Shown here one piece after another: positions 16,930 through 60,793 of a DNA stretch of 64,000 bases. Within the stretch, counting starts at the first letter, position 1. Each line of letters begins with the position of its first letter. A program made the position numbers and the translations under genes. The notes under the pieces are model-generated. The model made no database searches and was not told the origin of the DNA. It saw only the letters and a list, made by a program, of their open reading frames with translations. The stretch covers positions 147,785-211,784 of IMG/VR virus record IMGVR_UViG_3300044633_003049; one strand, written 5' to 3'.

Positions 16930-17950
16930 TGGTTTTTACTTTAATTGTTTTTGTTTTTATTTTATTTTTTTCTTTTCTTGTTAAACGTAAGAATGGATTT
17001 AAAAACTTTGTCCATGCGTCATCTGATTTGGGTAACATATTGAACAGTCCATCGTCCATCATCATTTTCATTGCGTTTTTATAAGATCTTCCTTCTTGGT
17101 CTAATGACTCGTTTATTAGAAGGTCAATGTTTTCTTTCGCCTCATCACTTAAAAAAGGTTCATCCAAACTCACGATACGATTGTTTACGTCAAAGAACTC
17201 TTCCCCAAATACTCCGTGTTTAGTAACACCTGTTAGTAAATTTGTAATTAATTTGTTGTGTTTGTCTTGTTCAAAAAGAAGTTCACTCCTTTCTTTAACT
17301 TGTTGAACTGAGATTGATTCGGTTCTAAGTTCAGGGAAAAAAGATAGAAATCTTTTAACACCCATTCCTTTAATTCCTGCAATGTTGTCTGACGAATCAC
17401 CACATATCATCTTAACCAACCTAACGTTTTCAATTAAGATGTCTTCTTTGTCATAAACTATCGTATCATTTTGTTTGTATAACTTTCCGTGAGACGGATT
17501 GTAAATTTGTGTGTTTTCTGAAACCAATTGGGTGAGGTCTCCGTCTGAAGAATAAATTATTTTATTTTCATCTGGTGAGTTTTGTGTGTAATAAGCAATG
17601 TTATCATCTGTCTCACAAAATTCATATTCACCCTGTCTTACATATAGTTCTTCAAGATATTGTTTAACCCTATCTCTTTGACTTAAATAAGATTGTAATT
17701 CTTCTTCCGACCTTAATCTTGAACGTCGGTTTTCCTTGTAATGAATGTATATTTTCTTTCGGTTTTGTGAACCTTCGTGTCCATCCCAAAATACTACAAT
17801 CTTATCTAAATGGTAGTACTCAAACGCTCTCCTAAGAGTATTAAGGAAATGATATATTCCCCCAACATGTTGTCCTTTATGAAAAGCATTTTTGACACCG
17901 TAAAAACCAATTGTGAGTAGATTGTCTCCATCAACAAGTAAAACCGACAT
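16922..17950 (-). CDS. 5'-3' exonuclease / RNase H (T4 rnh, PolI 5'-nuclease family)
   Basis: LLVDGDN, VVFWDG, ETDDNIA, SSDGDLTQL, GDSSDNIAGIKGMG helix-hairpin motifs. Confidence 0.9.
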   Translation of the reverse strand: MSVLLVDGDNLLTIGFYGVKNAFHKGQHVGGIYHFLNTLRRAFEYYHLDKIVVFWDGHEGSQNRKKIYIHYKENRRSRLRSEEELQSYLSQRDRVKQYLEELYVRQGEYEFCETDDNIAYYTQNSPDENKIIYSSDGDLTQLVSENTQIYNPSHGKLYKQNDTIVYDKEDILIENVRLVKMICGDSSDNIAGIKGMGVKRFLSFFPELRTESISVQQVKERSELLFEQDKHNKLITNLLTGVTKHGVFGEEFFDVNNRIVSLDEPFLSDEAKENIDLLINESLDQEGRSYKNAMKMMMDDGLFNMLPKSDDAWTKFLNPFLRLTRKEKNKIKTKTIKVKTNE

Positions 17951-17960
17951 TTAAAATAAT

Positions 17961-18941
17961 TTATAGATCACTTTCTTCTGTTACAACTTCTACGTCTGCG
18001 ATGTCTGTAACATTAACACCTAACATCTTACTGATGTAATCACCACTTTCTTTTTTATATTCCTCGATAGATTTCTTCTCTTCAGCGTCTTCTCTACCTG
18101 GCATAAATCCGTGTGATGTAACCAAGATACGTCCATCCTCATATCCTAAACCATTGATGTGGTTTTTCATAATTGAGATTTTTGTTCTTGTTGCAATTTT
18201 AACTTTTCTCTTATCTTTAGTGATAGAGATTTTAGTTGTTCCCGCTCCTTTTTGATTACCAAATAAGAATACAATACTTGAGTTTAACCAAATTGCTTCA
18301 CCGCCCTTTGCTTTAATCTTTGGTTGTCCAAAAGGATTGTCAGGTAATTCTACCCAAGGTTGGTTTACAATGATTAACGTGTTTGTATAAGGTTTATCTG
18401 TTCTTCTTGAACCTGAGATACGTTGATTAATACCCATTCCAATTTTGTCAGCTAATACCGACGCATTGTGTTGTTTACCACCTTTACCATCATATGTCAT
18501 CTTACATGGAACTGAACCAACCGAATCCCAAAGAATTAATAAATCGTGAGGTAAATCACCTTTTTCTTGTGCATCTAATAGTTCATTTATATATTCTGTA
18601 ATTTGCTCAATATACTCAAAATCACTATTAAAAAGGTAGTCTCCGTCTTTATTAAACCCCATTAATTCGGCGTGGTCCCAACTCCATTTTTGTTCTGTAA
18701 TTACAAACACAGGAACAACACCTTTCTTTTGTGCATCTACCGCTGCCTTTACAAGTGCTGTAGTTTTACCCGTATCACTATGTCCTAATAACATATTGAT
18801 GTGTCCCATTGCAGGACCTGGAATACCACAAGCATCCAAGAAAGCATCTCCCAAATCAAAGAAACGGTCTGGTTTATATTCGGCCTCTTTTGAGAATTTT
18901 TTTTTAATTGCTGAAAAATCTGTTTTTTTAATACCTGCCAT
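17961..18941 (-). CDS. recA: RecA/UvsX-like recombinase
   Basis: Walker A GHSDTGKTT, ILWDSVG Walker B, IIVNQ, GGEAI. Confidence 0.9.
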   Translation of the reverse strand: MAGIKKTDFSAIKKKFSKEAEYKPDRFFDLGDAFLDACGIPGPAMGHINMLLGHSDTGKTTALVKAAVDAQKKGVVPVFVITEQKWSWDHAELMGFNKDGDYLFNSDFEYIEQITEYINELLDAQEKGDLPHDLLILWDSVGSVPCKMTYDGKGGKQHNASVLADKIGMGINQRISGSRRTDKPYTNTLIIVNQPWVELPDNPFGQPKIKAKGGEAIWLNSSIVFLFGNQKGAGTTKISITKDKRKVKIATRTKISIMKNHINGLGYEDGRILVTSHGFMPGREDAEEKKSIEEYKKESGDYISKMLGVNVTDIADVEVVTEESDL

Positions 18942-18954
18942 GTTTTTGTTTTTA

Positions 18955-18984
18955 AAAATGGGGCGGATATTTCACCACCCCGTT
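18955..18984 (-). terminator. Intrinsic terminator after the SSB gene
   Basis: Minus strand ggggtggtgaaatatccgcccc hairpin followed by attttt. Confidence 0.65.
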
Positions 18985-18990
18985 AAATAA

Positions 18991-19833
18991 TTAGAACGGA
19001 AGATCTCCATCTACATCCGCATCGTCTTGTGGGTCAACCACAGGAGTAGAAGATTTCGGTGCTCCGATAGTTTCTTCTGTTGTCAAATTAGAAACCCATT
19101 TGCTACTTGCGGTGTCCCAACGTGGAACCTCACCTCTTGCAACCATTTCCAAATAATCTTCACCCTTTTTAGAGTAAACATCAGACCAAGTTAATTCATC
19201 TTCTAACCACGTTTTTGCAACGTCAGCGTCAGTATGTAATGGACTTGGGTCATCATTTAATACTGAATTAATAACAGTGTACTCTTTTCCTGTACCTGCC
19301 TTTGTTAAGGTTAAAGACAAGATTAAGTCACGACCTGTTTCAGAATTGGTAACATCACCTTTATTACGGAAGATTGGGAATACTTTGTCGATAACACCAT
19401 CACCTTTATGGTTGTGTTTAAATCTCCAAAATTTAACTCCGTCAGATTCGTGGTCTCTATCTATAACTTTAACGATATAGAATTTACGAGAACGATATTG
19501 ACGTGCGGCTTCTCTATCAGCCTCAACACCCGTACCCATTAAAGCTTCATTAACCTCATTTAATGGTGAACGTTTTCCTTCTTGTTTTGGGTCATATAAT
19601 TTAACCCATTTTCCATCCACTTGAATTTCGTGGAAGTAAACCTCAACAAACGGAGAAGAACCGTCTTTTGTTGGTAAAATACGAATACGTCTTTCTTCAC
19701 CCTTAGAACCCTTAGGTAATACGGTTGTGAAATAACGTTTCATTCTGTCCTCTGAGGACATTTTGTTGCTATTGCCACTTGTGGCGTTTTTGTTTTTCTC
19801 GTACTGTGCAAGTACTGCGTCAAATGTAGACAT
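18991..19833 (-). CDS. Single-stranded DNA-binding protein, gp32-like
   Basis: IRILP..DGSSPF.EVYFH, R.KFYIVKVIDR; acidic C-terminal tail DDADVDGDLPF; next to RecA. Confidence 0.8.
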   Translation of the reverse strand: MSTFDAVLAQYEKNKNATSGNSNKMSSEDRMKRYFTTVLPKGSKGEERRIRILPTKDGSSPFVEVYFHEIQVDGKWVKLYDPKQEGKRSPLNEVNEALMGTGVEADREAARQYRSRKFYIVKVIDRDHESDGVKFWRFKHNHKGDGVIDKVFPIFRNKGDVTNSETGRDLILSLTLTKAGTGKEYTVINSVLNDDPSPLHTDADVAKTWLEDELTWSDVYSKKGEDYLEMVARGEVPRWDTASSKWVSNLTTEETIGAPKSSTPVVDPQDDADVDGDLPF

Positions 19834-39751: not shown

Positions 39752-41032
39752 TTAAAATAAATATCCTACCGATATATTTGAATTTATTGATGGTCTATCC
39801 GATAAAATAATATACGAGTTATCATCTGAAACAATAAATCCGATACCTTGTTGTTCTGCCAATCCATTAATCTCAACTGTAACAACACTATTAATCATTT
39901 CATTTGTATCAAACATTGGTCTATTATTGGTTGGTGGGTCAAAAAAAGATCCCGAACCTGTGAATTGAAACTCTTCTCTAACAAAACTAAAAATTGTACC
40001 TGATGTTCCTACTATTCTACTATTTTTACTTTTATAATAAACAATGGTGAGTTTACTTCCGGCGGTTGGGATATATGGAGAAACAAATTCTATTTTTGAA
40101 GTGTAAGTAATATGTAAATAATTTGTATTTTTTGTTTGTAATACATCATTTACATAAACACCGAATAATGTACCAATACTTTCACCAACATCAAAAACAG
40201 TTTGAATTCCGTCAACTGCTAAATTTACAGTTTGTATTATATCATTAGTATTAACAACTTTATTGACACCAAATTTGGGATTGTCTTTTATAAACTCAAA
40301 CATGGTAAATAATCTATTAATGGCGGGTTTCACTTCAAACTCCTCACTATCTATCAAATAACCTAACATTGTAAATTGGTAATTCTGAACGTAAAATCTA
40401 CGTCCGTCAATCGTTTCAATTGGACTATTATCTTCAATCTTATCAAGAACAATAGGAATGTAATGTCCTTTAATCATTGTGTAATCTTGTCTTGACGCAA
40501 AGTGACGTAATATGATTTTATTAAACTTGTTTAAATCTCTAAATTTATTACATATAATTGTTACATCATAAGTAATATCCACAGGGATAGGTTGTGGGAT
40601 TGTATATATATCCGCACCTAATTGTGAACCATTCCAATTCGGAACTGATGCATAATAAACTTGGTATCTATCGGGTATTGTTCTTTGAACTGCCGGATTT
40701 GTTCCAAATTGAACGTCAGGTTTTCTAATGGTTGCAATAAATGGAAGTTGCATGTTCCCGTCTTCATCACTAAACGACCAATTCTGCATAAACTCTCCCC
40801 ATCTTTGTATTGTAAGAATTTTATTTATAATTGGGATTTGTTTACCGTCAGTTACAACCTTAAATGTTTTTGTAACATAATCTAACATACCCCTATCTAA
40901 ATCATCGTGTAATATAGAATCGGGAAGATTCGTATCTGATTTGGTAATATTATCCAAAAGTTCCTGTCTCCTTTTAGTGAGTTCAGAACCTTTATAGATT
41001 TCAATATTTGTTTTTCTTTTAGGTATTCCCAT
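39752..41032 (-). CDS. Tail completion/terminator-like protein (gp15-like N-terminus) with C-terminal beta-sandwich extension
   Basis: DLDRGMLDYV, LPFI...R, PIPVDITYDVTI; start MGIPKRK at 41032 preferred because the track start overlaps the upstream gene. Confidence 0.55.
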   Translation of the reverse strand: MGIPKRKTNIEIYKGSELTKRRQELLDNITKSDTNLPDSILHDDLDRGMLDYVTKTFKVVTDGKQIPIINKILTIQRWGEFMQNWSFSDEDGNMQLPFIATIRKPDVQFGTNPAVQRTIPDRYQVYYASVPNWNGSQLGADIYTIPQPIPVDITYDVTIICNKFRDLNKFNKIILRHFASRQDYTMIKGHYIPIVLDKIEDNSPIETIDGRRFYVQNYQFTMLGYLIDSEEFEVKPAINRLFTMFEFIKDNPKFGVNKVVNTNDIIQTVNLAVDGIQTVFDVGESIGTLFGVYVNDVLQTKNTNYLHITYTSKIEFVSPYIPTAGSKLTIVYYKSKNSRIVGTSGTIFSFVREEFQFTGSGSFFDPPTNNRPMFDTNEMINSVVTVEINGLAEQQGIGFIVSDDNSYIILSDRPSINSNISVGYLF

Positions 41033-41033
41033 G

Positions 41034-41552
41034 TTATACTCCTCTAAATGTATTGTCTTGTACCGCAGTACATACAATGTTTCTATAATATGGTTTGTAA
41101 CCAAACATATTATGTTTATTATCTGATGTTACCTTTCCGTCATTTGAAACATTATAATATCTTGTTCTTGTTTCAGATTCAGGATATCCAATAAAATCTC
41201 CGTATTTAATGTCAACCTTCAATTCTTCTAAATGTTTTATATATACCGATAATGTCATATTACCTGGTTCGTTGTATCTTAATAACCCACCTTTATATGT
41301 ACTATTCTTTGGTTCTTCTATTTTAACTAACGCATAAAACTCAATAGGTGGGAAATATTTAATTTCATCCACTCCAACTTCGGCGTAAACGTCGTCGTTT
41401 TCTGTTTTTTGTTTATCTACACGATATAGTACCAATTTTATCCCCAAATCACCATGAAGGTACTCCTGACCCATTTGAATATTTAAATCAAAGTCGTCTT
41501 GAGAAAGGAATTTGGACATTCTCGTAATAGGTAGTTTATTATTCATATCCAT
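41034..41552 (-). CDS. Head closure / neck protein (gp14-like)
   Basis: Position upstream of the tail-completion gene; LYRVD, GNMTLSVYIKHLEELKVDIKYGDFI. Confidence 0.5.
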   Translation of the reverse strand: MDMNNKLPITRMSKFLSQDDFDLNIQMGQEYLHGDLGIKLVLYRVDKQKTENDDVYAEVGVDEIKYFPPIEFYALVKIEEPKNSTYKGGLLRYNEPGNMTLSVYIKHLEELKVDIKYGDFIGYPESETRTRYYNVSNDGKVTSDNKHNMFGYKPYYRNIVCTAVQDNTFRGV

Positions 41553-41600: not shown

Positions 41601-43352
41601 ATGGAGATAAAAATTCCCGAGATTGAAGCGAGAAGTATATTATTAACTTACGAAGGTTCCAATAACCAATTATTGGATTGGAAAAGAAAGATAGATGAGG
41701 TTAAAAATTTTAAGTTAACCAGACCCCAAGCTGAATATGTAATGAAATATTACGAATTGAGTCCAAAGGTCGCTAGAAAATATATTAATTTGGTTTCCAC
41801 ATTTGGAGAAAAAATTATGGAAGAAAGGTTATTACCTGTCCCTCCTGAAAAAATTTGGTGTGAAAAATTGTTATGTGAATCTGATAAAGCTTTTCATATA
41901 TGGGGTAAAGTTTTAGATAGTGACCAAATGAGTGCAATGTGGTTACCAAAGTCCGCAATTGTCCAAGATGAGAAAAAGTTAAATCGTGTAATAGATTATA
42001 GTCCGTATGATAATCGTCCTCCTATGGAACATCAGAAAGTCGCCATTGAGAAATTATTAGCAAACAATAAGTTTATATTGGCCGATGATATGGGTCTTGG
42101 AAAAACGACGGCAGCGGTTATTGCATCAATGGAAAGTGGTGCGAAGAAAGTATTAATTGTATGTCCCGCGTCTCTTAAAATAAATTGGGATAGAGAGATT
42201 AAAAATTACACCGATAGAAAAGTATTAATAGTTGAAGGTCGTAAATGGGGTTCTACCTTTGATTACTACATTATCAATTACGATATATTAAAGAATTACC
42301 ACACTACAGAAAAAAGTGAAGATAGTGATGACTATAAATTATTGGTAAATGAAAAGTTTGATTTAGCAATTGTGGATGAAGCACATTATGTTAGTAATAG
42401 CACGGCGAACAGAACTCGTTTATTGAATGATGTATTAGAAACCATACCACGAGTTTGGTTATTAACAGGAACCCCAATGACGTCAAGACCAATTAACTAT
42501 TTTAATTTATTAAAGATTGTTGATTCACCTTTAACATTGAATTGGCAATCTTATGTTCGTCGTTATTGTAAAGGTTATCAATTCACAGTTGGAAATAGAA
42601 AAGTGTGGAACACAAGTGGTGCAAGTAATTTGGATGAGTTAAGAGAAAGAACAAAGTCATATGTTCTTCGTAGAATGAAAACAGATATTTTAGATTTACC
42701 TGAAAAAATTGTTACACCTGTATTTGTAGAGTTAAGTAGTAAAATGTATGATGAGGAGTTAGAAGAGTTTACAAGAATTAGTAATGATAAGAAGGACAAT
42801 GAAACTATTAGTGTTACCTTAAATCGTTTAATGAAAATTAGACAACTTATTGCTTACGAAAAAATTCCATATACTTGTGAGATTATAGACAAATGTTTAG
42901 ACCAAGGAAAGAAAGTAATTGTATTCACCAACTTTACAATGTCATTAGATATGTTACATGAGAAATACAAAAAGAACTCTGTAATATTAAATGGTAGTAT
43001 GTCTAAAGAAAAGAAACAAGAAAGTGTTGATAGATTTCAAAATGAAGATAAGGTAAAAATATTTATCTCAAATATTATTGCTGGTGGTGTTGGTATTACA
43101 TTAACCGCCGGTGAAGTTGTGGTTATGAATGACTTATCATTTGTACCTGCACATCATAGTCAAGCCGAAGATAGAGCATATCGTTATGGTCAACAGAATA
43201 GTGTATTAGTATATTATCCCGTTTTTGAGAATACAGTTGAGAAAATCATCTATAATATATTACAAAAGAAAAAAGGAATCATCGACCAAGTTATGGGAGA
43301 TGGTGAATACTCAGAATCGTTCAGTAAGGATTTACTTAAAAGTCTCTTGTAA
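41601..43352 (+). CDS. SNF2/SWI2-family helicase (HARP/SMARCAL1-like)
   Basis: ILADDMGLGKT, IVDEAH, LLTGTP, GVGITLT, QAEDRAYRYGQ. Confidence 0.9.
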   Translation: MEIKIPEIEARSILLTYEGSNNQLLDWKRKIDEVKNFKLTRPQAEYVMKYYELSPKVARKYINLVSTFGEKIMEERLLPVPPEKIWCEKLLCESDKAFHIWGKVLDSDQMSAMWLPKSAIVQDEKKLNRVIDYSPYDNRPPMEHQKVAIEKLLANNKFILADDMGLGKTTAAVIASMESGAKKVLIVCPASLKINWDREIKNYTDRKVLIVEGRKWGSTFDYYIINYDILKNYHTTEKSEDSDDYKLLVNEKFDLAIVDEAHYVSNSTANRTRLLNDVLETIPRVWLLTGTPMTSRPINYFNLLKIVDSPLTLNWQSYVRRYCKGYQFTVGNRKVWNTSGASNLDELRERTKSYVLRRMKTDILDLPEKIVTPVFVELSSKMYDEELEEFTRISNDKKDNETISVTLNRLMKIRQLIAYEKIPYTCEIIDKCLDQGKKVIVFTNFTMSLDMLHEKYKKNSVILNGSMSKEKKQESVDRFQNEDKVKIFISNIIAGGVGITLTAGEVVVMNDLSFVPAHHSQAEDRAYRYGQQNSVLVYYPVFENTVEKIIYNILQKKKGIIDQVMGDGEYSESFSKDLLKSLL

Positions 43353-44351
43353 TTTTATAAAAAACTCAGACAATTCATTTGATAAATTTTCATCTAAAAA
43401 ATTACCAATTGTTATCATTACGACATCATCTTTAATTTCCATTAAATTGGTACCGCTTTTAACATATTGTAATTCAATTATTAATTCAGGTTTGTTATAG
43501 ATAAATTCTGTAATTTTATGTAAAGTTTCAGGTACTTCCATATGTTCATTAATTTTTATTGGTTGTAATATTTCCTTACGGAAAGTATGATTTATAGTTC
43601 CTCTTATTATATATTGTAATAAATTTTGAAATGTGACTATTGTTGTTTTATTGTCTTTAAAATCAACAAAACAATAATATTTAGCTTTTGATTTTAAATC
43701 ATTAACTGAACTTTCAACAACAAAACCTATTTCATTTTCTTGAATTATTTTTCCCGATTTAACTTGTATTGTTATTATTTCACCACAATCATTTTCAATT
43801 ATTATGTCAATACCTTTAAAATCGTTACCGTCCCCTCTCATAATACTAAAATCCATTTTAAGTATTTTACAGTCAGGAAAAAGTTCCCTTATTTTATACA
43901 TAACTGCAATAGTGGTTACCTGACCTCTTCCCCAAGATTTATTACAACGACGCCAAAAATTTTTAAAATATTTTTCTTCAATGTTCATAGTAAAAAATAA
44001 ATCAAAGTTCTCATCTACAAATTCAAATAACTTATCAATATTTTCAAATAACGTGGTCGGATTATCGTAATCTAAGGTTTCATTTTTAAAATGTTTATAT
44101 AAATAAAAGAGATCTAAAGTACAATAAGGATGTGTATTAACGGTATTTCTCCAACACCAAATTGATTGTTCATTTAAAATACCATAATTTCCTCTCCACC
44201 AGAAACCCCAAATTCCAAGTCTCTCACCATTTCTTTTGAAGACCTCATTACATTTTTTAATATAATATGACTTAAATGTATCATTCTGAAAAAGGTTATG
44301 AAAATAATTGTGTCTTAAATTATAAGGACTGTAAGGATATATTTCTATCAT
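43332..44351 (-). CDS. Hypothetical protein with a PD-(D/E)xK-like nuclease motif
   Basis: DFKGIDIIIENDCGEIITIQVKS; aromatic-rich N-terminus; opposite strand to both neighbours. Confidence 0.45.
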   Translation of the reverse strand: MIEIYPYSPYNLRHNYFHNLFQNDTFKSYYIKKCNEVFKRNGERLGIWGFWWRGNYGILNEQSIWCWRNTVNTHPYCTLDLFYLYKHFKNETLDYDNPTTLFENIDKLFEFVDENFDLFFTMNIEEKYFKNFWRRCNKSWGRGQVTTIAVMYKIRELFPDCKILKMDFSIMRGDGNDFKGIDIIIENDCGEIITIQVKSGKIIQENEIGFVVESSVNDLKSKAKYYCFVDFKDNKTTIVTFQNLLQYIIRGTINHTFRKEILQPIKINEHMEVPETLHKITEFIYNKPELIIELQYVKSGTNLMEIKDDVVMITIGNFLDENLSNELSEFFIKLQETFK

Positions 44352-44390
44352 AAGTTCAAATTTACACTATTTATTAGAATATACCAAATT

Positions 44391-45506
44391 ATGGCCACTA
44401 TTATTACACCGGAAGAAAGAGATAAATTATATACGCAGGTTTTTCACCTTTTGGGGATGCCAGTTCGTGGAATTGAACTTACACAGGAACAAATGGATAC
44501 CTTTTTAGAGTTATCTCTATCAGAATACGAACAATACGTTAGTGATTGGTTAATTGAGTCTCAATGGTCAGCATTGGCCGGACTTGATTTAGATACACAA
44601 TCCCTTTCAAGGGCTTTCACAACAAGAAGTTTAGATTACGAAACTCAATATACTCACTCATATTCCAAAATTGTAGGTTTACAGGCTGGAGGAACAAGTG
44701 AATTAAAGAAGGACTATTTTACAGTTTCACAAGGTCAACAAGTATATGAAATCCCTGCTGGTCGTGAAATTAACGAGTTATTATACTTTACACGTGCAAC
44801 TTTAAATGACTCAATTGTTGATCCATTTTTAGGTGGTTTTGGTGCACTTGGTGGTGTTGGTTTCGGTGGTGTGGGTGGATATGCTCAAGTTGGGACCGCT
44901 GGTTCATATTTTATGACACCGGGTTTTGACCTATTATTAAGAATGCAAGATAGAAACTTTAAGAGTAGAATGATTGGTGGTGATTTAACTTATAAGATTA
45001 CCGCGGGTCCTGAAGGTAAGAAATTGGTACACCTTTATAACGTACCAGGTGGTAAATTTGACTTTGGTTCTATCGCTAAAAATAACTACAACGTTTGGTA
45101 TTGGTACTATGAAACTATGGATAGAGATACTTGTTTAGAGAAAAACAAAGATGTTATTAAATTACCTTCGGATGTAATGACGGAAGAATTAACATGGGGT
45201 AGTTTAAATAAACCTTCACAGAATTGGGTTAGAAAATATCTAATCGGTTATTCTAAAGAAGGTTTAGGTCGTATATGGGGTAAGTTTTCAGGTGATTTAC
45301 AAGTTCCTGATAGTACAATTAAATTAGATTACAGTTCATTAATTACTGAAGGTAAAGATGAAAAATCTAAATTGGTTGAAGAACTTATGGCAAGATTAGA
45401 AAGATTACGTCCTGACAAAATACTTGAAAGAAAAGCAGGTGAGGCAGAGAACCTAAACAAATCTCTTAAGTTTAGAGCAATGCCTGCACCTATTAATATT
45501 ATCTAA
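44391..45506 (+). CDS. Neck / head-tail adaptor protein (gp13-like)
   Basis: LGMPVRGIELTQEQMDTFLELSLSEY N-terminus; WVRKY.....KEGLGRIWGKF; LITEGKDEK..L.EEL. Confidence 0.8.
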   Translation: MATIITPEERDKLYTQVFHLLGMPVRGIELTQEQMDTFLELSLSEYEQYVSDWLIESQWSALAGLDLDTQSLSRAFTTRSLDYETQYTHSYSKIVGLQAGGTSELKKDYFTVSQGQQVYEIPAGREINELLYFTRATLNDSIVDPFLGGFGALGGVGFGGVGGYAQVGTAGSYFMTPGFDLLLRMQDRNFKSRMIGGDLTYKITAGPEGKKLVHLYNVPGGKFDFGSIAKNNYNVWYWYYETMDRDTCLEKNKDVIKLPSDVMTEELTWGSLNKPSQNWVRKYLIGYSKEGLGRIWGKFSGDLQVPDSTIKLDYSSLITEGKDEKSKLVEELMARLERLRPDKILERKAGEAENLNKSLKFRAMPAPINII

Positions 45507-48400
45507 CTTTCTATTGCGTGTAATGCATAATCATTACCATTAGTCTCAATAATTTCCTCTTCATTTGATTTGGTACTTTGTTCTTGAAACGAAATTACTT
45601 TTCTATTGTGGTCAACCCAAAATGGGTCGGCAAGTTCTAAACTATTTTCCACATACATAAAGTAAGGGTCTCTACCCACACGATTCCAAAATAATACTTC
45701 ACTATCTGATAAAGTCATTACCTCATCTAATTTATCTTGACCTTCTTCTTTTAATGGAAATCCATTAACTAATTCACATTGTAATTTTGTAAAGAATTGT
45801 CTTTGGTCAGGTGATTCAATTAATATATCTTCTCTAATTGATGGATGAAAAACAACTAACAATGGTTCAACACGTTTGTTAAAATTATTAAGATAACGAG
45901 GAACATTATAATCACCTTTTAAATCAGGATTATTTAATATTTCTTTTTCATCAATCATATAACAATTCACTTCAATGTAATCTTCGGGCATTGGCGTACC
46001 ATGTTTTGCAAGATATTCTTCTAAAACTTTCTTACTAGGTCTACTAACTTTCTGAACATCTCCAGATGATTTCTTAACACCATTATTTACATAATAAATT
46101 GTATCTCCTAATCCTGCGGGATAATCACTTCTCATAATTAATTCCATATGTGCTTGACGAGACATTAATGAACCAGCTTTAGTTGTCTTCTGAACATACT
46201 TTCTATAATCATTAATAGATTGTTTAACACGAGCTTTATTTGCAATTTTAGATAATGGAATTTCTTTATTATAGATTTTACTTACAAATTCATAATATAA
46301 TTCCACAAAAGATAATCCATCACCATTTAACAAATACTTTAATCCTTCATCTAAAAACTCTACGATATATGTTTGTAATTTTTTTGATTTGATTGTGTTA
46401 CCTGTTAATTTAATTTTCTCTTTTCCTTTCTTCATCATCTTAATGATATAGTTCTTACGAGAAACATTAATACAAGCCGGCGCCACATAGTCAATATCTA
46501 ATCCCATTTCATTTCTCATAAAGATATCATTGAATTCTGCGGTGTCCGCTTCAATACCTTTATATTCTTTTCCTAATGTAACCATTTCATTTAATCCTTT
46601 ACCAACATAAACCGTATCATCAATATTCAATGGTGTTTCAAAGTTCACACCATCCGTGTCCATTACCAAAGGTTTATAACCTTTCTTCATATAGAACATA
46701 ATCATCATCCTTAAACACTGACGACCAACACAGGTAATGGTTTCACCCATATTCATATCTCCCCAAGGGAATACGTGTGGTGCAGATAAACTACCGAAAT
46801 AAGCGTTGATAAAAATCTTAATTGGTAATTGTTTTCTATCATACATTTCAGCAAGAACTGGATCACTATTTTTTAATTCACCAGCAAGTAATTTATATTT
46901 GATACGAATATCACGGAAATATTTTAACATTGATTTTTGTACACCCATCACATCACAATCAGGGAACACATCATATACAAGTTGAATTGATGGATAAAGT
47001 GATGCGTAGTCAAACTTAACAATGTTCTTTGAATAACCTACGTTAAGTAATCTTGATAAACCACCAGTGATTGCACGTTTCTCATCTTTTGCTGGTATTG
47101 CTAAATTGTTTTCATAAGACCATGCTAACATAATAATTTTCCATAGTGTTGCAGTTCCCATTGTTGCAATTCTTTCATAAGTGGTAGGTACAAGTTTTGA
47201 TAATAAGAATGTTGATTGAGAAAATGAATCATCTACAACCATAGTCTCATACAAGTCATCGTCAAGATATTGTTCCACAATTTTTCTTCCTGTCCATATC
47301 TCAAATTTACCAGGATATTTCTGTGTTAGATTTTCTGTACCAGGTTCTCCAATTTGTTTGTAGTTTCCTGTCTTTGGATTTACATAATAACTTTCGTTAT
47401 CAAGATATATTTTTGAAATCTTTGCACCATCTACGTATACACGATTAGGTTTTTCTTTCTCCAAATATGTTGTAATATATTTTAATCCCCAACTTTTAAT
47501 TTCAGAATTGATAGCTTGTGCTCTACGAACTGAATGTGCAATATCAATAATATTAAATCCCCATATAACGTGTTGTTTGTATGGTTCAATTTCATTTGCA
47601 AGTTTTAACATTCCTTCCTTCTCTTTCATTCCTTGCGTTGTGAATATTTGTGTAAGACCATTAACGTCAACACCAAGTATTTCTGCACGTTTTAATATAA
47701 ATGGCCAGTCAAAGAACGCGGAGTTATAACCTGCAACAATGGTTGGTTTTAAATCTTTAATATACTTGAAAAATCTTTCTATACATTTCTTTTCACCGTC
47801 TTCACCAAATGCTGCAATTGTTTCGTTCATACCACGATTGTCTTTAACTCCAATTAATATAATAACACAAGTTTCAGGGTCAAGACCTGTGGTCTCAATA
47901 TCAAATACAAATCTATTAACACCACTATATTCATCAATACCTTTAAATAATCTTTTTTTCTTCTGTATAAGATATTGTTCTACAGGGTTTAATACGGTAA
48001 AATGTTGTCTAACTTTTTCGTCCCATGGATTTAATCCGCCCATTCTAAAGAACGATACTAAATCCGTATATGATTTAATACTCTTAACAATATGGGTCAT
48101 ACCATTTTCTAAACGTTCGTTGCCGTGTGTATCTAACTTTTCAATTAATATCCCAAACTCACCCATACGTTTTTTCTGCATGGCCTTTGAGTTGTTATAA
48201 AAATTTAATCCTGTTAAATCACCTACCCATATAAACGGTGTAAATGTATCAGATTTAATAATTTTTCCTTCAATTGGGTCTTGAATAATTTTCCAAATTG
48301 TATTGGTTGGGTAGTCATATTCAACACCGACGATATACATTTCGTCGTCACCACCATTGAGGAAGCCTTCAATAACTTCCTGAGAGATAACCTCTTTCAT
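45503..48400 (-). CDS. Family B DNA polymerase
   Basis: ExoI FDIETTG, ExoII GYNSAFFDWPF, motif A DYASLYPSI, motif B KIFINAYFG, motif C MDTDG. Confidence 0.92.
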   Translation of the reverse strand: MKEVISQEVIEGFLNGGDDEMYIVGVEYDYPTNTIWKIIQDPIEGKIIKSDTFTPFIWVGDLTGLNFYNNSKAMQKKRMGEFGILIEKLDTHGNERLENGMTHIVKSIKSYTDLVSFFRMGGLNPWDEKVRQHFTVLNPVEQYLIQKKKRLFKGIDEYSGVNRFVFDIETTGLDPETCVIILIGVKDNRGMNETIAAFGEDGEKKCIERFFKYIKDLKPTIVAGYNSAFFDWPFILKRAEILGVDVNGLTQIFTTQGMKEKEGMLKLANEIEPYKQHVIWGFNIIDIAHSVRRAQAINSEIKSWGLKYITTYLEKEKPNRVYVDGAKISKIYLDNESYYVNPKTGNYKQIGEPGTENLTQKYPGKFEIWTGRKIVEQYLDDDLYETMVVDDSFSQSTFLLSKLVPTTYERIATMGTATLWKIIMLAWSYENNLAIPAKDEKRAITGGLSRLLNVGYSKNIVKFDYASLYPSIQLVYDVFPDCDVMGVQKSMLKYFRDIRIKYKLLAGELKNSDPVLAEMYDRKQLPIKIFINAYFGSLSAPHVFPWGDMNMGETITCVGRQCLRMMIMFYMKKGYKPLVMDTDGVNFETPLNIDDTVYVGKGLNEMVTLGKEYKGIEADTAEFNDIFMRNEMGLDIDYVAPACINVSRKNYIIKMMKKGKEKIKLTGNTIKSKKLQTYIVEFLDEGLKYLLNGDGLSFVELYYEFVSKIYNKEIPLSKIANKARVKQSINDYRKYVQKTTKAGSLMSRQAHMELIMRSDYPAGLGDTIYYVNNGVKKSSGDVQKVSRPSKKVLEEYLAKHGTPMPEDYIEVNCYMIDEKEILNNPDLKGDYNVPRYLNNFNKRVEPLLVVFHPSIREDILIESPDQRQFFTKLQCELVNGFPLKEEGQDKLDEVMTLSDSEVLFWNRVGRDPYFMYVENSLELADPFWVDHNRKVISFQEQSTKSNEEEIIETNGNDYALHAIES

Positions 48401-48432
48401 CTTTTAATTTTTTTTAATGTGACGTATTAGCT

Positions 48433-48447
48433 TGTGATTAAATCACA
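48433..48447. promoter_or_regulatory. Palindrome tgtgatt-a-aatcaca upstream of the polymerase start
   Basis: 7-bp arms, about 33 nt upstream of the ATG at 48400. Confidence 0.4.
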
Positions 48448-48491
48448 GTTTGCCTTGTTTACATTAATAAGTATAAGAAAAAAAGGAGGTA

Positions 48492-48845
48492 TTAAAAAAT
48501 ATTAATGTATAATTTTTCCTTAACGGGTAATATAAGTTTATTACCATTATCAAACGACACATTTACTTTTCCTTCAAATTTACCTATTTCAGATGTCTGT
48601 TGTTCAGTGAATCTATAAACGATATAATATTCGTCAGTCGTTTGGTTATATAATTTTGTTCTTGTTGTGATATTACAAGTTTCATTTAATAATACGGGTT
48701 CACCGGTACTAACATCAAACATGTCAAATGTGATTGTTGCATTTTCCAATAAATCATTAAATGATGATTTGTCGTTTTTACCGTCATCAATCATCCTCAT
48801 TTTTAATATTGGGTCAGATGCCCCTTGTCTTATAAAGAATTCCAT
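48492..48845 (-). CDS. BppU N-terminal-like baseplate/adaptor domain protein
   Basis: FFIRQGASDPILKM, ATITFDM, YRF...QT...GKFEGKVNV.F....LILP. Confidence 0.55.
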   Translation of the reverse strand: MEFFIRQGASDPILKMRMIDDGKNDKSSFNDLLENATITFDMFDVSTGEPVLLNETCNITTRTKLYNQTTDEYYIVYRFTEQQTSEIGKFEGKVNVSFDNGNKLILPVKEKLYINIF

Positions 48846-48867: not shown

Positions 48868-50988
48868 TTATAAACCGTATTTAGATTTGTCTGCGTTATA
48901 GTTATTCAAAACTTCAGTTGATGTTAATGCACTACTATATAAACGGGTTATACCAATCTTACCATCAAAGTATTGTGGGTATTCACCATTATTATATGAA
49001 CCAATGTATAAGTTTGTAGTAGTGTTTAATATACTTGCTAAACTGTGATTTACAGTACCGATACTAACACCATTAACAAATGTTTGAAATGTATTGGCCG
49101 CAACATTAGTAAATACATAAACTATTTGATACCATGTATTAAGTGTTGCGGTGTGGTTTGTACTATTAACAAATAGTGTTGATCCTGAACCCGCACCCGA
49201 ACCATATTGTCCATAAAATGTTGAAGCAGTTGTTCTAACACTATAACCCACACTTGTTGTTAACCCAGCTGCGTTAAATTTACCAAGTACTACATCATTA
49301 CCTGCTACTGATTGATTCACCCAAACTTCTACTGTCCAATCACCACTTCCCGGTTCTAATGCCGCATTATCTGCAACTGAAATTTGTGATGAAGAACCAT
49401 TGTATGTGAAGTATGGTGATGTATATGTTATATTACTCATTGTTCCATTCAAATCATTACCTGATAAATCATTAATTGTTGTTCCACTACCAGGATATGA
49501 AGAAAGGTTTGATGGGTCGTAATGTAATACTAAATTGCTTGTAGTTATCCCACTTGCGGCGACACTTGGTGTGGGTGTAACTGAATTGGTAGGTGTGACC
49601 GTATTAGTGGGGGTATTAGTGGGTGTATTCGTTGGAGTTTGCGTAGGTGTTTCAGTAACCGTAGGAGTTGGTGTGTTAGTTGGAGTAGGTGTTGGGGTTT
49701 CACTTCCTGTTGGTGTTGGTGTGTTAGTCGGTGTATTAGTCGGCGTTTGCGTTGGAGTAACGGTATTTGTTGGTGTCGAAGTAATTGTGTTAGTAGGAGT
49801 GTTTGTAGGTGTAATACTTGGTGTTGGTGTATTGGTTGATGTATTAGTTGGTGTAACAGTATTAGTAGGAGTAACAGTATTAGTAGGTGTTGGTGTGTTA
49901 GTTGGTGTTGGTGTTGGGCTTGGTAAAACATCTGAACAACCATATATTGAATAATTTGGTTTAATTGATGTTAAATAATGATGATTAACATGAACAAAAT
50001 CCAACGGTTCTTCAAAATACTTAACTTGTTTTAAAACACCATTAAGTGAATTATTACCAAAAATTTGTACGATTTCATTTTCAGAAGACCTTAATGATGG
50101 AATTATTTCCTCAAAGTTTTCTAATTTATATATTCTTTTACCGTTATGATAAATTTTAAGTGTTCCTAATCTTTTTTGTTTTTCTCCTGCCCATTTTTTA
50201 TTTAATTCTTCCACATAACTATATTCAGTATCCCCCGTAATCCAATTTAATGATCCGGTAACCATTGTATAACCTGTGGTGATTTGTGTTGAGTGACCTA
50301 TAAATGAACCCGAAAAGAAACTACCAGTATCACCAGTTGTCGGAGCCCATAATTCATCAGTATAACTAACTGCGTGTGGACCTAATATTAAATCATTAAA
50401 TCCCCCCTCATTCTCAATCTCACAACCATAAAGATATGTGTATCTATCAAATGTGATTGTAATATTAAAATCGTCATATATTCCATTTGCACATAATTCA
50501 GGAGTATTACCTGTTATTGTGTAATATGACTCCGTGTACCCACTATCTGGATTACATAATCCCGAATAATGAAATGACTCCCATTTTATCTTTTTATTAT
50601 TGGTAAATGAGAATGTTAAATTATTATCCGCGTAATTCCCATTAGCCAAATCATCTTTAATTCCTAAATAGTAAAATGTCGTTCCAGTTACTAATCTATC
50701 AAAAACCAAATCTAATGTCCAACCCTTCTCTGTTCTTCTACGAACAGTAAAATCACAGGTGTCTCCCGTATAACGAGTATTCACCGCAACTTCCCAAGGT
50801 GAAGTTAGTCCCGTTAAACAAGAAGAATCGATAGTTAGTCCTGTATATGTTATTTCCGTGTCGAAATCTAAGACCTCTTCATTATAATCCATTTGAACTT
50901 TTGATAGTTCATAGTCATATAATTCGGAATAATCTACCTTTAAATCGAGTTTGGAACCGTAAAATCTTAAAATATTCTGATTAGCCAT
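48868..50988 (-). CDS. Virion protein with Pro/Thr mucin-like linker and C-terminal LamG/concanavalin A-like domain
   Basis: LVLHYD...[50 protein letters not shown]; start MANQN at 50988 preferred. Confidence 0.8.
49545..49920. repeat. Low-complexity Pro-Thr repeat (TPTPTNTPT)
   Basis: Translation of the 48868 ORF. Confidence 0.9.
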
Positions 50989-50989
50989 G

Positions 50990-51030
50990 TTTATATAAAT
51001 ATCTTTCATAACATTTGATATTTATATAAA
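50990..51030. promoter_or_regulatory. Perfect 14-bp inverted repeat forming back-to-back putative late promoters
   Basis: tttatataaatatc 50990-51003 and gatatttatataaa 51017-51030, between divergent genes. Confidence 0.7.
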
Positions 51031-51041
51031 AGTCCATTTAG

Positions 51042-51815
51042 ATGAATAATTTTATAAAACAGGTAATTGAGGAGAAATTTGCATCAAAAGCACAACAAAG
51101 ATTCTTCTATGCAAAAGCCAAAGGGGGTAAAAATAAGAAGTGGTCCAAATGGGCCAAAGAGTTTTCTGATAAAACAGATTATAATAAAATACCTGATAAA
51201 GTAGAAAAAGAAGAAGAGGTGGATGAGATTGTAGATAAAAATGGTAATATCTTAACAAGTAAAAAACCTTCGGATTTAGATGCTAAAGGTGTTAGTTCCG
51301 ATTCAACAAGTGATGAAGTGGCTCTAACTGGTAAAGGTATGATGGGTAATTACGGTATGACTAAGGTTCAAAACTACACAAAGTTCTGGGGAGAGGGTAA
51401 ATTAACCAAAGGAGAACTTATTGAAATTGCAATGAAAGATGCTCTTGGATTTGATGCAACAATGGGAAATGACGCAGATTACGAAGAGGCTGAAGAATAT
51501 TTTGAAAAAGATTTAGGTTTGGACAGTGAAGAAACTGAAGATAGAATGGATCAAATGGGTTATGATAAAAATTTACCTGACGATAAGGTTAGATTAGTTG
51601 AGAACCCAAAGAAGTATATGGAGGAATATATTGAGAGTATTCTTAAAGGTAGAAGTAAAGATAATGATGTTTTAGAAAAGGAAAAGGAAGAAGTTGAACC
51701 AAAAGAAATACACCCAATTATTAAAAGACAACTTAATTCATTAAAAAATAGTATGGATAGTCACGGTTTAACTGCTGACGATGTAATTAATTATATTAAA
51801 AAAGATAATGAATAA
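51042..51815 (+). CDS. Hypothetical protein (putative head-internal)
   Basis: Charged 257-aa ORF with TATTTAT upstream. Confidence 0.7.
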   Translation: MNNFIKQVIEEKFASKAQQRFFYAKAKGGKNKKWSKWAKEFSDKTDYNKIPDKVEKEEEVDEIVDKNGNILTSKKPSDLDAKGVSSDSTSDEVALTGKGMMGNYGMTKVQNYTKFWGEGKLTKGELIEIAMKDALGFDATMGNDADYEEAEEYFEKDLGLDSEETEDRMDQMGYDKNLPDDKVRLVENPKKYMEEYIESILKGRSKDNDVLEKEKEEVEPKEIHPIIKRQLNSLKNSMDSHGLTADDVINYIKKDNE

Positions 51816-52302
51816 GGATTTAAAACATAGGATATTTGATATACCGCAGAACATTTTAGATAAGATTAACCACACAATTGTTGGTCTTAACGGAACACAT
51901 GTTCATGGTGTACAAAGAGCTAAGAAACTTTTAATAGATAAAAAAGTTAAATATGGACAGTTAAAAAGAATTATACATGACTTACAAAATATTGATAAAA
52001 TTGGTGATAGAGTTAGGTATGACTTGGCTGGTGGTGAATTAATGGATATGTGGTCCAAACAATACCTACAAGGTGAAAGAGATATGGTGAGTAATAGAAA
52101 AGACGGAAGAAAACAGGCTGATGATATTGGTGGGATAACAGGGGAAAGAAAAAATAGTCATTTGAAAAAACATTCAAAGAAGCCAGATTTCTTACCTCCT
52201 TTGAATATGATGAAAAGTAATTCACATAAATCTTCAATATCAAGTATTAAATTATCAGGTTTGTTTGAACAATTACAAAGAATAAAAAAATTAATGTTAT
52301 AA
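51808..52302 (+). CDS. Hypothetical protein
   Basis: 164 aa, C-terminal LFEQLQRIKKLML. Confidence 0.7.
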   Translation: MNKDLKHRIFDIPQNILDKINHTIVGLNGTHVHGVQRAKKLLIDKKVKYGQLKRIIHDLQNIDKIGDRVRYDLAGGELMDMWSKQYLQGERDMVSNRKDGRKQADDIGGITGERKNSHLKKHSKKPDFLPPLNMMKSNSHKSSISSIKLSGLFEQLQRIKKLML

Positions 52303-52303
52303 T

Positions 52304-52699
52304 ATGGCAAAGACACAATTAGAAGTTATCGCTGAAAAATTAAGAACACAAGAAGTTGTTATTAACAGATATTCAGAAAAAAATGGTTATGGTATCACAA
52401 GTAAAAATGCACTTTCCGACGGAGATGAATTAGGTAAAGGACAAGTTGGTGATACGGGTACTGTCGGTTCATTAACTGATATTAACACAAGAATTCAAAT
52501 TATGGCAACCAATAAATATAGTGGTGAAAATGGATATGGTGTTACAAATCCTAATGCAATGTCAGATGGTGACGAATTTGGTAAAGGACAAATTGGTGAT
52601 AATGGACAAGTTGGTTCATTAACCGATATTAATACAAGAATACAAGTTATTAATAAAAATAAATTTGGTGAAACCAACAAATATCCTGATTTCGAATAA
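52304..52699 (+). CDS. Hypothetical protein built from two 49-aa repeats
   Basis: N.YS..NGYG.T..NA.SDGDE.GKGQ.GD.G.VGSLTDINTRIQ occurs twice, 147 bp apart. Confidence 0.75.
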   Translation: MAKTQLEVIAEKLRTQEVVINRYSEKNGYGITSKNALSDGDELGKGQVGDTGTVGSLTDINTRIQIMATNKYSGENGYGVTNPNAMSDGDEFGKGQIGDNGQVGSLTDINTRIQVINKNKFGETNKYPDFE

Positions 52700-53529
52700 T
52701 GAATTTTAATCAAACATTCTTCGATGTTATTGAAGAACAAAATATATTAAAGACGACTAAAACAAAACCTATTGTTGATGCAATCAAAAGTAGGAATAAG
52801 ATATCTTTTTTTTATAGTGGGCCAAGAAAACCCGCAAAAAATAGTGTTAAACCAGGTAATAGAATTGACGCAGAAGCGGTTGCGTTAGGTTTAAATAAAA
52901 AAGGTAATTTAGTTGTTCGTGCGTATGTCCAACCACCATCAGTATCCAAAAAAGGATTTGATAAAACAGGTTGGAGAACTTTTATGGTTGGTCGTATGAG
53001 TAATTTAAAGGTTAGTGATAGTAAGTTTGACCAAAAAAGACCCGATTATAAAGAAGGTGACGATAAATCTATGAGTGTTACTTATGTAACTTCCGATTGG
53101 ACAAATAAACCTGAAGTTAAAAAACCAAGGATTGTTAAACCTATTGTTACTAAACCAACTACTCCTACAACTGAACCTACGGAACCAACACCAACAGAGC
53201 CGGAGGTTACAACATCACAAGAACCAAAGACAACAGAGTTACCTCAACCAAAACCTCAAACTAAACCTGAACCAACACCACAAGATACGGTTGATAAAGG
53301 AAAAGAACTATATAAAGCTAAAGAAGTTGATTGGATTAATAAACAAAAAGAGGTTGGTGGTAATACTAAACCAGGTCAAGGTACAAGAGAAAGATTTAAA
53401 AAGGAAGTTGAAAAAGAATTACCTCAACCAAAACCAACAGAAAAACCTGTTGCAAATCCTGAAGAAGAGGATGAAAATAAGAAACTTCAAGAAAGTATTA
53501 AAAACATTAAGCGTTTAATGTTTTCATAA
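52699..53529 (+). CDS. WYL-like domain protein with Pro/Thr/Glu-rich tail
   Basis: DAIKSRNKISFFYSG...R.IDAEAVALG...LVVRAYV...GWRTFMVGRMSNL matches the WYL pattern; no HTH. Confidence 0.65.
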   Translation: MNFNQTFFDVIEEQNILKTTKTKPIVDAIKSRNKISFFYSGPRKPAKNSVKPGNRIDAEAVALGLNKKGNLVVRAYVQPPSVSKKGFDKTGWRTFMVGRMSNLKVSDSKFDQKRPDYKEGDDKSMSVTYVTSDWTNKPEVKKPRIVKPIVTKPTTPTTEPTEPTPTEPEVTTSQEPKTTELPQPKPQTKPEPTPQDTVDKGKELYKAKEVDWINKQKEVGGNTKPGQGTRERFKKEVEKELPQPKPTEKPVANPEEEDENKKLQESIKNIKRLMFS

Positions 53530-53562
53530 AAAATATTATATTAAAATAAAATATTTATTAGT

Positions 53563-54135
53563 ATGTCACAAGGAAAAGGAACAATATCATCTAACGATTT
53601 AATGCAAAAATTAGTTAATGCTAAAAAGGTTATGAATAAAGTAGACGGCGGAAACTACGAAAGAGGTCATGTAAATGAAGAAATGTTAAGGTCTAATCCA
53701 GAAGATTTAATGAATAGTCAAGATTTACCACAACAATCTTCTACAAAACAAATGGGTATGCCGTCTGTTGATAAAATACAAAATTCTAAATTACCTGACG
53801 CAATTAAAAAAGCAATGATTGAGAATCCAATTCAACAAATATCTTTAAATGATACACTTGATATGGATTTCTTAAAAGGTGCTAAAAGATTAATGGAACA
53901 AGAAGGTGTCGGTAAAAAACAACCACAACAAAAACAAGTAGTACAATATAATAGTAATATTGATATGGGGGCAATTGCCACACTTATTGAAAATACAGTT
54001 CGTAAAGTGATGGACGAAAAGTTAAATCAAATATTAACAGCATCAACCACAGCATCAATTAATGAAAATTTAGTATTAAAGGTAGGTGATTCAATATTCA
54101 AAGGTAAAATCACTGGTGTAAATAAAGCAAAGTAA
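53563..54135 (+). CDS. Hypothetical protein
   Basis: 190-aa ORF with TATTTAT upstream. Confidence 0.7.
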   Translation: MSQGKGTISSNDLMQKLVNAKKVMNKVDGGNYERGHVNEEMLRSNPEDLMNSQDLPQQSSTKQMGMPSVDKIQNSKLPDAIKKAMIENPIQQISLNDTLDMDFLKGAKRLMEQEGVGKKQPQQKQVVQYNSNIDMGAIATLIENTVRKVMDEKLNQILTASTTASINENLVLKVGDSIFKGKITGVNKAK

Positions 54136-60094: not shown

Positions 60095-60793
60095 ATGCCG
60101 AGACCACGAACCCAAAAAATATACTTTGGTGAGGATCAAGAAAAAGCCGTCGTTAATTACCTAGAGAGTACTGACGAAGACGAAAGAAACAAAATATTCA
60201 ATGAGTTTTTAAGAGAACCATTAGTTATTATGGTTGAAAGTATTATTAGAAGATATAAATTATATAGGAAGGATATGGAATTTGAAGAAATTCACACCGA
60301 CACTATGTCTTTTTTAATCACCAAAATTAATAAATTTGACCACACAAAGAACACTAAAGCGTATTCATACTTTGGAACTATCTGTAAAAACTACCTTATG
60401 GGAGCAATACAGAAAGACACTAAAGAACAGAATAGACAAGTATCTTATGATGACATATCATCTGACATTGAAGATAGAAAAGATTTGTCTTATGTTATTG
60501 ATGAACATATTATTGATTATCAAAGTGTTATAATTAAATTAACCATTTCTTTAGAAAACTTTATTGAGAAGGAAAACCTAACGGAAAACGAACAAAAATT
60601 GGGATATGCCTTGTTAGAGATTTTTAGCAATTTTGATAAAATATTCCAAGTTGGGGATGGTAATAAATTCAATAAGAACCTTATCTTACTCTCATTACGA
60701 GAAATGACCTCATTATCCACAAAAGAGATTAGAGTATCCCTAAAACGTTTTAAAAAGATGTATGACGGTATTTTGGTTGGATTTTTAGAATAA
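60095..60793 (+). CDS. Sigma-70-like factor, T4 gp55-like late sigma candidate
   Basis: Region-2-like KINKFDHTKNTKAYSYFGTICKNY; N-terminal KIYF. Confidence 0.7.
   Translation: MPRPRTQKIYFGEDQEKAVVNYLESTDEDERNKIFNEFLREPLVIMVESIIRRYKLYRKDMEFEEIHTDTMSFLITKINKFDHTKNTKAYSYFGTICKNYLMGAIQKDTKEQNRQVSYDDISSDIEDRKDLSYVIDEHIIDYQSVIIKLTISLENFIEKENLTENEQKLGYALLEIFSNFDKIFQVGDGNKFNKNLILLSLREMTSLSTKEIRVSLKRFKKMYDGILVGFLE

Follow-up and report, generated by a model that had tools for sequence, protein, structure and literature searches.

WYL domains are the ligand-sensing part of bacterial regulators of anti-phage and DNA-damage responses, and the WYL domains that have been solved bind single-stranded DNA (ssDNA). 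Short C-terminal targeting tails are found on the scaffolds of P22 and phi29 and as the cargo-loading peptides of encapsulins, and Duda, Oh and Hendrix are said to have described in 2013 a C-terminal capsid-targeting tail on the HK97 protease gp4. In T4 the prohead protease gp21 cleaves at the motif L/I-x-E, and the first 10 residues of the internal protein (IP) IPIII, with I-A-E at their end, suffice as a capsid-targeting sequence (CTS) (PMC9026906). The DarB/Dar proteins of P1 are loaded into the capsid by means of a signal at the N-terminus and injected to protect DNA (PMC9024508). The subject of the present analysis is a phage gene for a WYL-domain protein (Table 1), located in a window of 64,000 nucleotides that forms the final 64 kb of the 211,784-bp IMG/VR record IMGVR_UViG_3300044633_003049.

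Our best explanation, to which we give a probability of roughly 55%, is that the product of this gene is an internal head protein made as a precursor, which loses a piece at either end, is packaged with the DNA, is ejected and binds a nucleic-acid ligand. The precursor would enter the prohead by means of two signals, an N-terminal leader that resembles the CTS of T4 and a C-terminal amphipathic tail that copies the tails of the protease and the scaffold. Cleavage by a protease of the gp21 type would follow behind residues 13 and 265, where the only two L/I-x-E sites end, and would yield a basic protein of about 28 kDa in which a stand-alone WYL domain is attached to a long proline-rich spacer. 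The mature protein would remain associated with the packaged DNA, exit together with it at infection and, by analogy with T4 IPI* and P1 Dar, enter the host along with the genome. There the ligand of the WYL barrel would be a nucleic acid, with ssDNA the likeliest one, as in DriD, CapW, BrxR and PafBC.

The gene product compares with the described systems as follows. With T4 IPI, IPII, IPIII and Alt it has in common a short N-terminal leader ending in L/I-x-E and a phage that encodes a protease of the gp21 family; as for the T4 IPs, its gene lies away from the head module and the mature protein is predicted to be small and basic, and as in Alt both termini carry an L/I-x-E site (PMC9026906). 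Unlike the T4 IPs, to which it has no sequence homology, its cargo part is a WYL domain on a spacer of some 120 residues, its packaging is proposed by deduction, and it has a second, C-terminal signal that is common to the protease and the scaffold. The beta-barrel is that of BrxR, CapW, DriD and PafBC, with conservation of the R-x-F...R-I motif and of the Arg that follows the WYL strand, but the protein is phage-encoded, lacks both the winged helix-turn-helix and the WCX domain, has capsid-type signals and scores below the Pfam threshold. Like the tails of HK97 gp4, P22, phi29 and the encapsulin cargo, its tail is short, follows a flexible linker at the C-terminus and is common to several putative cargo proteins and the protease, although the motif is unrelated and the tail opens with a protease site. 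Like P1 Dar, the protein would be loaded into the capsid by an N-terminal signal and injected, whereas phage type, signal and proteins differ and Dar has no WYL domain. A literature search of incomplete coverage brought up no paper connecting WYL domains with proteins inside the virion.

The phage and the gene

The window stems from a large T4-related myovirus, as is evident from markers such as a tail sheath, a baseplate wedge, ribonucleotide reductase, a DnaB-type helicase and a UvsX-like recombinase, to which the record adds a gp32-like single-stranded DNA-binding protein (SSB) and a family-B polymerase. Its coding could be read without the need for an alternative genetic code. According to CheckV the record is 63% complete; the part with the head module is absent from it, and the head genes were read from a relative (G001; 335,630 bp, 100% complete) and from the head locus (L144) of an IMG/VR contig that also bears a 100% identical copy of the gene (L007).

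The start codon of the gene sits on the stop codon of the upstream open reading frame (ORF), so that the two ORFs overlap. A word search returned more than 1036 metagenomic homologues, the best 120 of which are 62-96% identical along their entire length, and no cultured relative was found by blastn or tblastn against 50,697 phage records. Metagenomic contigs that are otherwise unrelated keep the gene order, and some of them are genomes of 310-336 kb. Homologues in such number and with kept synteny go well beyond chance, and the ORF is a real gene. We regard the gene as a core gene of a widespread, uncultured clade of T4-related marine jumbo phages of about 335 kb.

A divergent WYL domain on a disordered spacer

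The AlphaFold model, built from 20 orthologues, has a predicted local distance difference test score (pLDDT) of 80-90 in the N-terminal domain, disorder over residues 140-253 and a C-terminal helix at residues 255-275. An earlier reading of the DNA letters by themselves (the sequence-only reading) had described the N-terminal domain as WYL-like, and the model bears this out. The ten best Foldseek matches in the PDB are all WYL proteins (probability 1.00, root-mean-square deviation 1.9-4.2 A over 88-115 columns), and VIA-align gives Z-scores of 8.4-11.0 over 82-109 residues for 14 WYL entries, including DriD, BrxR, CapW and PafBC. Sm and Hfq proteins rank behind these at Z 6-8, as expected of an Sm-like barrel.

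The Pfam profile PF13280 aligns to residues 24-105 of the full-length protein over profile positions 5-70 of 70 with 14.3 bits (E 0.041), and to the domain alone with 16.5 bits, both below the gathering score of 21.8 bits. A match below threshold was likewise obtained for 19 of 20 diverse orthologues, the best with an E of 9.5e-4. As these scans did not lift the domain over the threshold, its profile was searched against 1.84 billion representatives, which yielded 265 clusters. PF13280 matches 47 of 70 distant members of the family at E <= 0.01 (best 4e-12, 41.9 bits), and the trimmed family alignment displays the canonical W-R-x-F-R-x-D-R-I motif. The W-Y-L triplet is replaced in the protein under study. 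Against the PDB sequences the trimmed family profile (A4) gave weak matches, the best of which, PafBC (E 0.01) and BrxR (E 0.14), are in register with it, and searches with three other profiles (A1, A2 and A3) returned no WYL protein.

The sequence-only reading had also noted that a helix-turn-helix (HTH) is missing, and indeed no HTH family matches the protein, and ahead of the barrel the model has just two short helices (residues 3-17 and 23-31). A WCX dimerisation domain was not found either, as the chain beyond residue ~135 is the disordered proline-rich spacer. From the fold, the transitive homology and the lack of HTH and WCX we conclude that the N-terminal domain is a divergent but genuine WYL domain and that we are not dealing with a WYL transcription factor.

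The long linker rich in Pro, Thr, Glu and Lys was also correctly recognized from the letters: the 114 residues from 141 to 254 comprise 21 Pro, 18 Thr, 22 Lys plus Arg and 18 Asp plus Glu. Its length varies among orthologues, with L181, P182, P184, K185 and P244 being invariant, and the motif L-P-Q-P-K-P is present in two copies. A helical module within the spacer (modelled helices at 200-218 and 229-239) is found in most, not all, orthologues; it is gapped in more than 30% of the homologues and conserved in distant orthologues.

Ligand binding by the WYL domain is plausible, because the domain (residues 14-140) has an isoelectric point (pI) of 10.1 and conserved arginines and because three of the four ssDNA contacts of CapW (S144, R164, R168 and R184) have putative equivalents, namely S40, R74 and R93, as traced through the BrxR alignment and the paper on the CapW-ssDNA complex. 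Shielding or sequestering of ssDNA would be the natural guess, since ssDNA is what solved WYL domains bind. The sequence-only reading proposed a decoy delivered by the virion, which would bind the ssDNA or nucleotide signal or poison the WYL dimers of the host and in this way mute the induction of anti-phage genes. The signal in question would be the one by which defences under WYL control, such as bacteriophage exclusion (BREX), cyclic-oligonucleotide-based anti-phage signalling (CBASS) and DNA-damage regulons, are derepressed. The decoy amounts to our best explanation narrowed down to one particular function after ejection. It agrees with a fold nearest to those of DriD, BrxR and CapW, with the putative equivalents of the contact residues and with termini that are consistent with packaging, and ejected phage proteins often act against defence, for instance T4 IPI* against GmrSD (PMC9026906, PMC13326640). 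Nevertheless we consider the decoy improbable. A few tens to hundreds of injected copies would be up against plentiful ssDNA, and the poisoning of host dimers in particular looks unlikely, as mixed dimers with host regulators are not expected of a protein that lacks the WCX dimerisation domain.

Within the 50,697 phage records the distant members of the WYL family had a single match, in one unannotated record of 636 kb, where the domain lies in the middle of a 418-residue protein, so that this case is uninformative on the termini. In another uncultured phage a 659-residue protein (P0232, L103:8001-9980) combines a WYL domain of this family with a prohead serine protease domain of the XkdF type (PF14550, E 2.7e-16); its gene adjoins those for a 1551-residue protein, a 990-residue protein and an amidase. 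We count this fusion as support for a link to the head core. The gene context of three other distant relatives (P0205, P0251 and P0252) was uninformative, as their contigs are short or come without DNA.

Predicted cleavage sites and the N-terminal leader

The motif [LI]-x-E occurs in the protein at residues 11-13, again at residues 263-265 and nowhere else, and each of the two sites is kept in 20 of 20 orthologues. In composition-matched shuffles the probability of a site at both ends and none inside was 0.0012. Cleavage after both sites would leave residues 14-265, with a predicted mass of 28.4 kDa and a pI of 9.6.

The first of these sites closes the T4-CTS-like leader, a second signal that was absent from the sequence-only reading. 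It ends in V-I-E-E at residue 13, as does the leader of the 257-residue protein that opens the gene block at its residue 11. When the leaders of the T4 IPs were taken directly from the T4 record (NC_000866), the closest match to the CTS of IPII and IPIII was that of the 131-residue protein encoded just upstream, the residues 3-11 of which are identical at six of nine positions. All three leaders are conserved in orthologues. Among the representatives of the WYL family, 104 out of 139 (75%, a count inflated by their relatedness) have an [LI]-x-E within residues 3-22, as compared to 4-9% in later windows of the same proteins and to a baseline of 20-24% in the phage proteome. A variable middle residue, as seen in the leader site, is expected if it is a protease site.

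In the complete relative, eight mostly unrelated proteins start with M-K-L-x-D-[IL]-[IL]-x-E, a pattern that occurs nine times in 106,124 residues, eight of which are N-terminal. This suggests that the clade has a portable capsid-targeting leader. The eight genes lie within 15550-48676 of G001 (e.g. 15550-16395, 18951-19784, 42494-42937 and 48155-48676), a region that is not in the record of the window phage.

The C-terminal tip and the head core

The conserved C-terminal tag of the sequence-only reading proved to be just that: over residues 263-276 the 120 best homologues show little or no variation, and the same holds for orthologues down to ~42% identity. The tip also ends the 164-residue protein encoded two genes upstream, where L-F-E is the sole L/I-x-E site and the tip is conserved in the family. 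Beyond these two it is the C-terminal tip of no other protein in the 211-kb record or in G001. A 181-residue protein of G001 (40623-41168, +) has a 12-residue copy at its N-terminus (residues 3-14), which scores 24.5 bits with a position-specific scoring matrix (PSSM) of the tip and ranks third in the proteome, behind the two tips.

The relative G001 has a T4-type head module. Its protease belongs to the gp21 family (PF03420, 72.5 bits) and its major capsid protein (MCP; PF07068, 211 bits) to the gp23 family, and the gp22 (scaffold) position holds a protein of 420 residues with 11 L/I-x-E sites. On the contig with the identical gene the order is T4-like (portal, two small genes, protease, scaffold position, MCP), and the PHROG matches there are head maturation protease, portal and major head protein. 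The tail of the protease contains R-M-K-K-L-M, kept in 80 orthologues, and that of the scaffold-position protein R-M-K-D-L-M, kept in 64. The regular expression R-[IM]-K-x-L-M for the tip core occurs four times in the G001 proteome, and all four are at C-termini, namely those of the WYL-domain protein, the 164-residue protein, the protease and the scaffold-position protein. With a hexamer PSSM built solely from the tips of the WYL-domain protein and the 164-residue family, the tails of the phage's own protease and scaffold-position protein score 18.7 and 14.8 bits; of the 104,029 positions in the proteome no more than 1 and 2, respectively, attain these values. The tail of one distant member of the WYL family matches the protease tail over 11 residues, above all of 5000 random windows. 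Apart from that match the likeness is confined to the hexamer core, as a 12-mer PSSM of the whole tip fails to single out the protease. A complex prediction for the MCP (L144:6033-7769) and residues 231-276 gave no answer (score 0.00) and counts neither way. That the tag serves packaging, as the sequence-only reading had suggested, is supported by inference from the tip core in the protease and scaffold-position tails and from the L-x-E at its start, and delivery by the virion is a reasonable inference from leader, tip and sites together.

A tail motif common to scaffold and protease would also fit a purely structural protein of the head core that organises the DNA, comparable to T4 gp67, gp68 or IPIII, without any role in the host after ejection. 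Its basic WYL domain would then aid assembly or the condensation of DNA inside the prohead core. The basic character of the protein, its status as a core gene with 62-96% full-length identity across the clade, and a block of five tightly packed genes, which suggests stoichiometric partners, are in line with such a role. We find it rather unlikely: WYL domains are known as ligand sensors and not as packaging proteins, and a simple counter-ion for DNA has no need of a long flexible spacer.

A different reading of the tip is that it recruits a hub of replication, recombination or transcription, which would make the protein a cytoplasmic adaptor similar to SSB, or else that the protein forms a two-part WYL regulator with its 164-residue neighbour. 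The layout resembles that of SSB, an acidic run precedes the tip, genes of DNA metabolism are nearby, and the two tip-bearing genes are close, being parted only by the 131-residue repeat gene. All the same, this is very unlikely. The tip is absent from the tails of polymerase, helicase, SSB and recombinase, with the SSB of the phage having a D-L-P-F tip of its own, whereas the motif is common to head-core proteins; the 164-residue protein has neither an HTH nor a known fold; and the terminal L/I-x-E pattern is left unexplained. An early version of this idea, an SSB-like adaptor that binds the sliding clamp, was rejected as no replication protein carries the tip and no match to the gp45 clamp family was obtained. 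An oligonucleotide/oligosaccharide-binding (OB) fold was not found for the protein, the fold being WYL/Sm-like.

Several points weigh against the proposal of an internal head protein precursor. Fold, architecture, conservation, the placement of the sites and the common tail motif come from computation, whereas packaging, cleavage, ejection and the ligand are deduced. The signals are short motifs in an AT-rich proteome that is rich in Ile, Leu, Lys and Glu, and the first regular expression for the tail motif was composed after the hits had been seen, although this does not apply to the later PSSM test. The terminal hexamer of T4 gp21 does not score with the tip PSSM, and neither a PHROG scan nor tblastn in the 50,697 phage records revealed sequence homology to T4 IPI, IPII or IPIII. 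The alignments with DriD and PafBC start at model residues 1-5, so that the N-terminal helix could be part of the fold, and one of the Arg residues that contact ssDNA in CapW (the first Arg of R-W-H-V-R) is N70 in the protein. Finally, the genes around it have no structural role (dUTPase, PhoH, glycosyltransferases), and in the complete relative ~14 kb lie between it and the head genes; the ip genes of T4 are equally scattered.

Neighbouring genes and further observations

The gene comes fourth in a tight block of five small genes that all point the same way (51042-54135; Table 1), and genes for a glycosyltransferase, a dUTPase and PhoH follow downstream. PHROGs holds no match for its product or for those of the four small neighbours. 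By its sequence the 164-residue helical protein would be a cargo of the prohead core too, and the 257-residue and 131-residue proteins probably are as well; the 190-residue downstream protein may be a fifth member of the set, which is uncertain. Such a set would load through the N-terminal leader, the C-terminal tail or both, and would then be trimmed by the gp21-type protease.

Table 1. Positions in the window of the gene for the WYL-domain protein, its parts and its neighbours
Feature	Position	Strand	Basis or remark
First gene of the block, 257 aa	51042..51815	+	N-terminus ends V-I-E-E at residue 11, CTS-like; kept in 59 orthologues
Sibling gene, 164-aa helical protein	51808..52302	+	Two genes upstream of the WYL-domain gene; same C-terminal tip
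Tip of the 164-aa protein	Residues 152-164, nt 52261-52299	+	L-F-E, then R-I-K-K-L-M-L
131-aa tandem-repeat protein	52304..52699	+	N-terminus ends I-A-E
Whole gene, 276-aa precursor of the WYL-domain protein	52699..53529	+	ORF list, translation, homologues, conserved synteny
N-terminal leader, residues 1-13, ends I-E-E (L/I-x-E)	52699..52737	+	Resembles the capsid-targeting sequence of T4 IPII/IPIII
WYL (Sm-like beta-barrel) domain, residues ~19-127	52753..53079	+	Foldseek, VIA-align, transitive Pfam homology
Disordered Pro/Thr/Glu/Lys spacer, residues 136-254	53104..53460	+	pLDDT <50, composition, variable length
Helical module within the spacer, residues 196-240 (G-G-N..P-G.G-T-R.R-F-K-K)	53284..53418	+	Low-confidence model
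C-terminal tip, residues 263-276	53485..53526	+	L-Q-E site, then amphipathic helix, core I-K-R-L-M
190-aa conserved gene, end of the block	53563..54135	+	Internal K-R-L-M-E, residues 107-112

For the fold of the 164-residue protein no PDB match was obtained at E <= 0.001, and no HTH was found in it. The 131-residue protein is made up of two tandem units of ~45 residues (S-D-G-D-E.G-K-G ... D-I..R-I) and has no family match; its relatives have up to four copies of the unit (L002:5362-5997). The K-R-L-M-E of the 190-residue protein reads as the core of the tip followed by an L-M-E site and is kept in relatives.

A 713-residue protein (48868-51009, -) is encoded divergently from the five-gene block across a gap of 32 bp. 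It matches a PHROG virion structural protein and has a C-terminal laminin-G/concanavalin-like domain and a spacer of ~100 residues with T-P-T-N-T-P repeats. The T4 late-promoter word TATAAATA occurs at 50994-51001 (+) and 51019-51026 (-), in each case oriented correctly for its gene of the divergent pair. As evidence for late expression the word was dropped, as the window contains 16 copies versus 16.8 expected from shuffles. A 232-residue protein (60095-60793, +) has a weak match to Sigma70 region 2 (E 0.0011) and may be a late sigma factor like gp55.

The gp32-like SSB (18991-19833, -) has an acidic D-L-P-F tip, as in bacterial SSB, and a 642-residue protein elsewhere in the genome (G000 16768-18696, -) ends in P-L-P-F; the two may represent a separate system of replisome docking by tips. 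Outside the window about eight adjacent ORFs (G000 41796-47762, -) end in N-K-T-L-I or near variants thereof and form a paralogous family.

Implications

If our best explanation is true, a bare WYL domain in the capsid would be a new class of injected protein and a candidate for interference with an ssDNA alarm signal. In its most specific form, which we think improbable, the clade would inject the stand-alone WYL domain as a sponge or shield for the ssDNA signal with which BrxR/CapW-type repressors switch on BREX, CBASS and further defences, and a whole family of phage WYL proteins would have capsid-loading leaders; the phage would then blind the host alarm just as it enters.

Independent of function, the analysis provides two short, portable candidate capsid-loading signals for abundant uncultured marine phages of ~335 kb. 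The tail is carried by the WYL-domain protein and its 164-residue neighbour; the leader is present on the WYL-domain protein, on two of its neighbours and, in the complete relative, on eight more proteins. With these two candidate signals the content of the capsids of the clade would become predictable from sequence.

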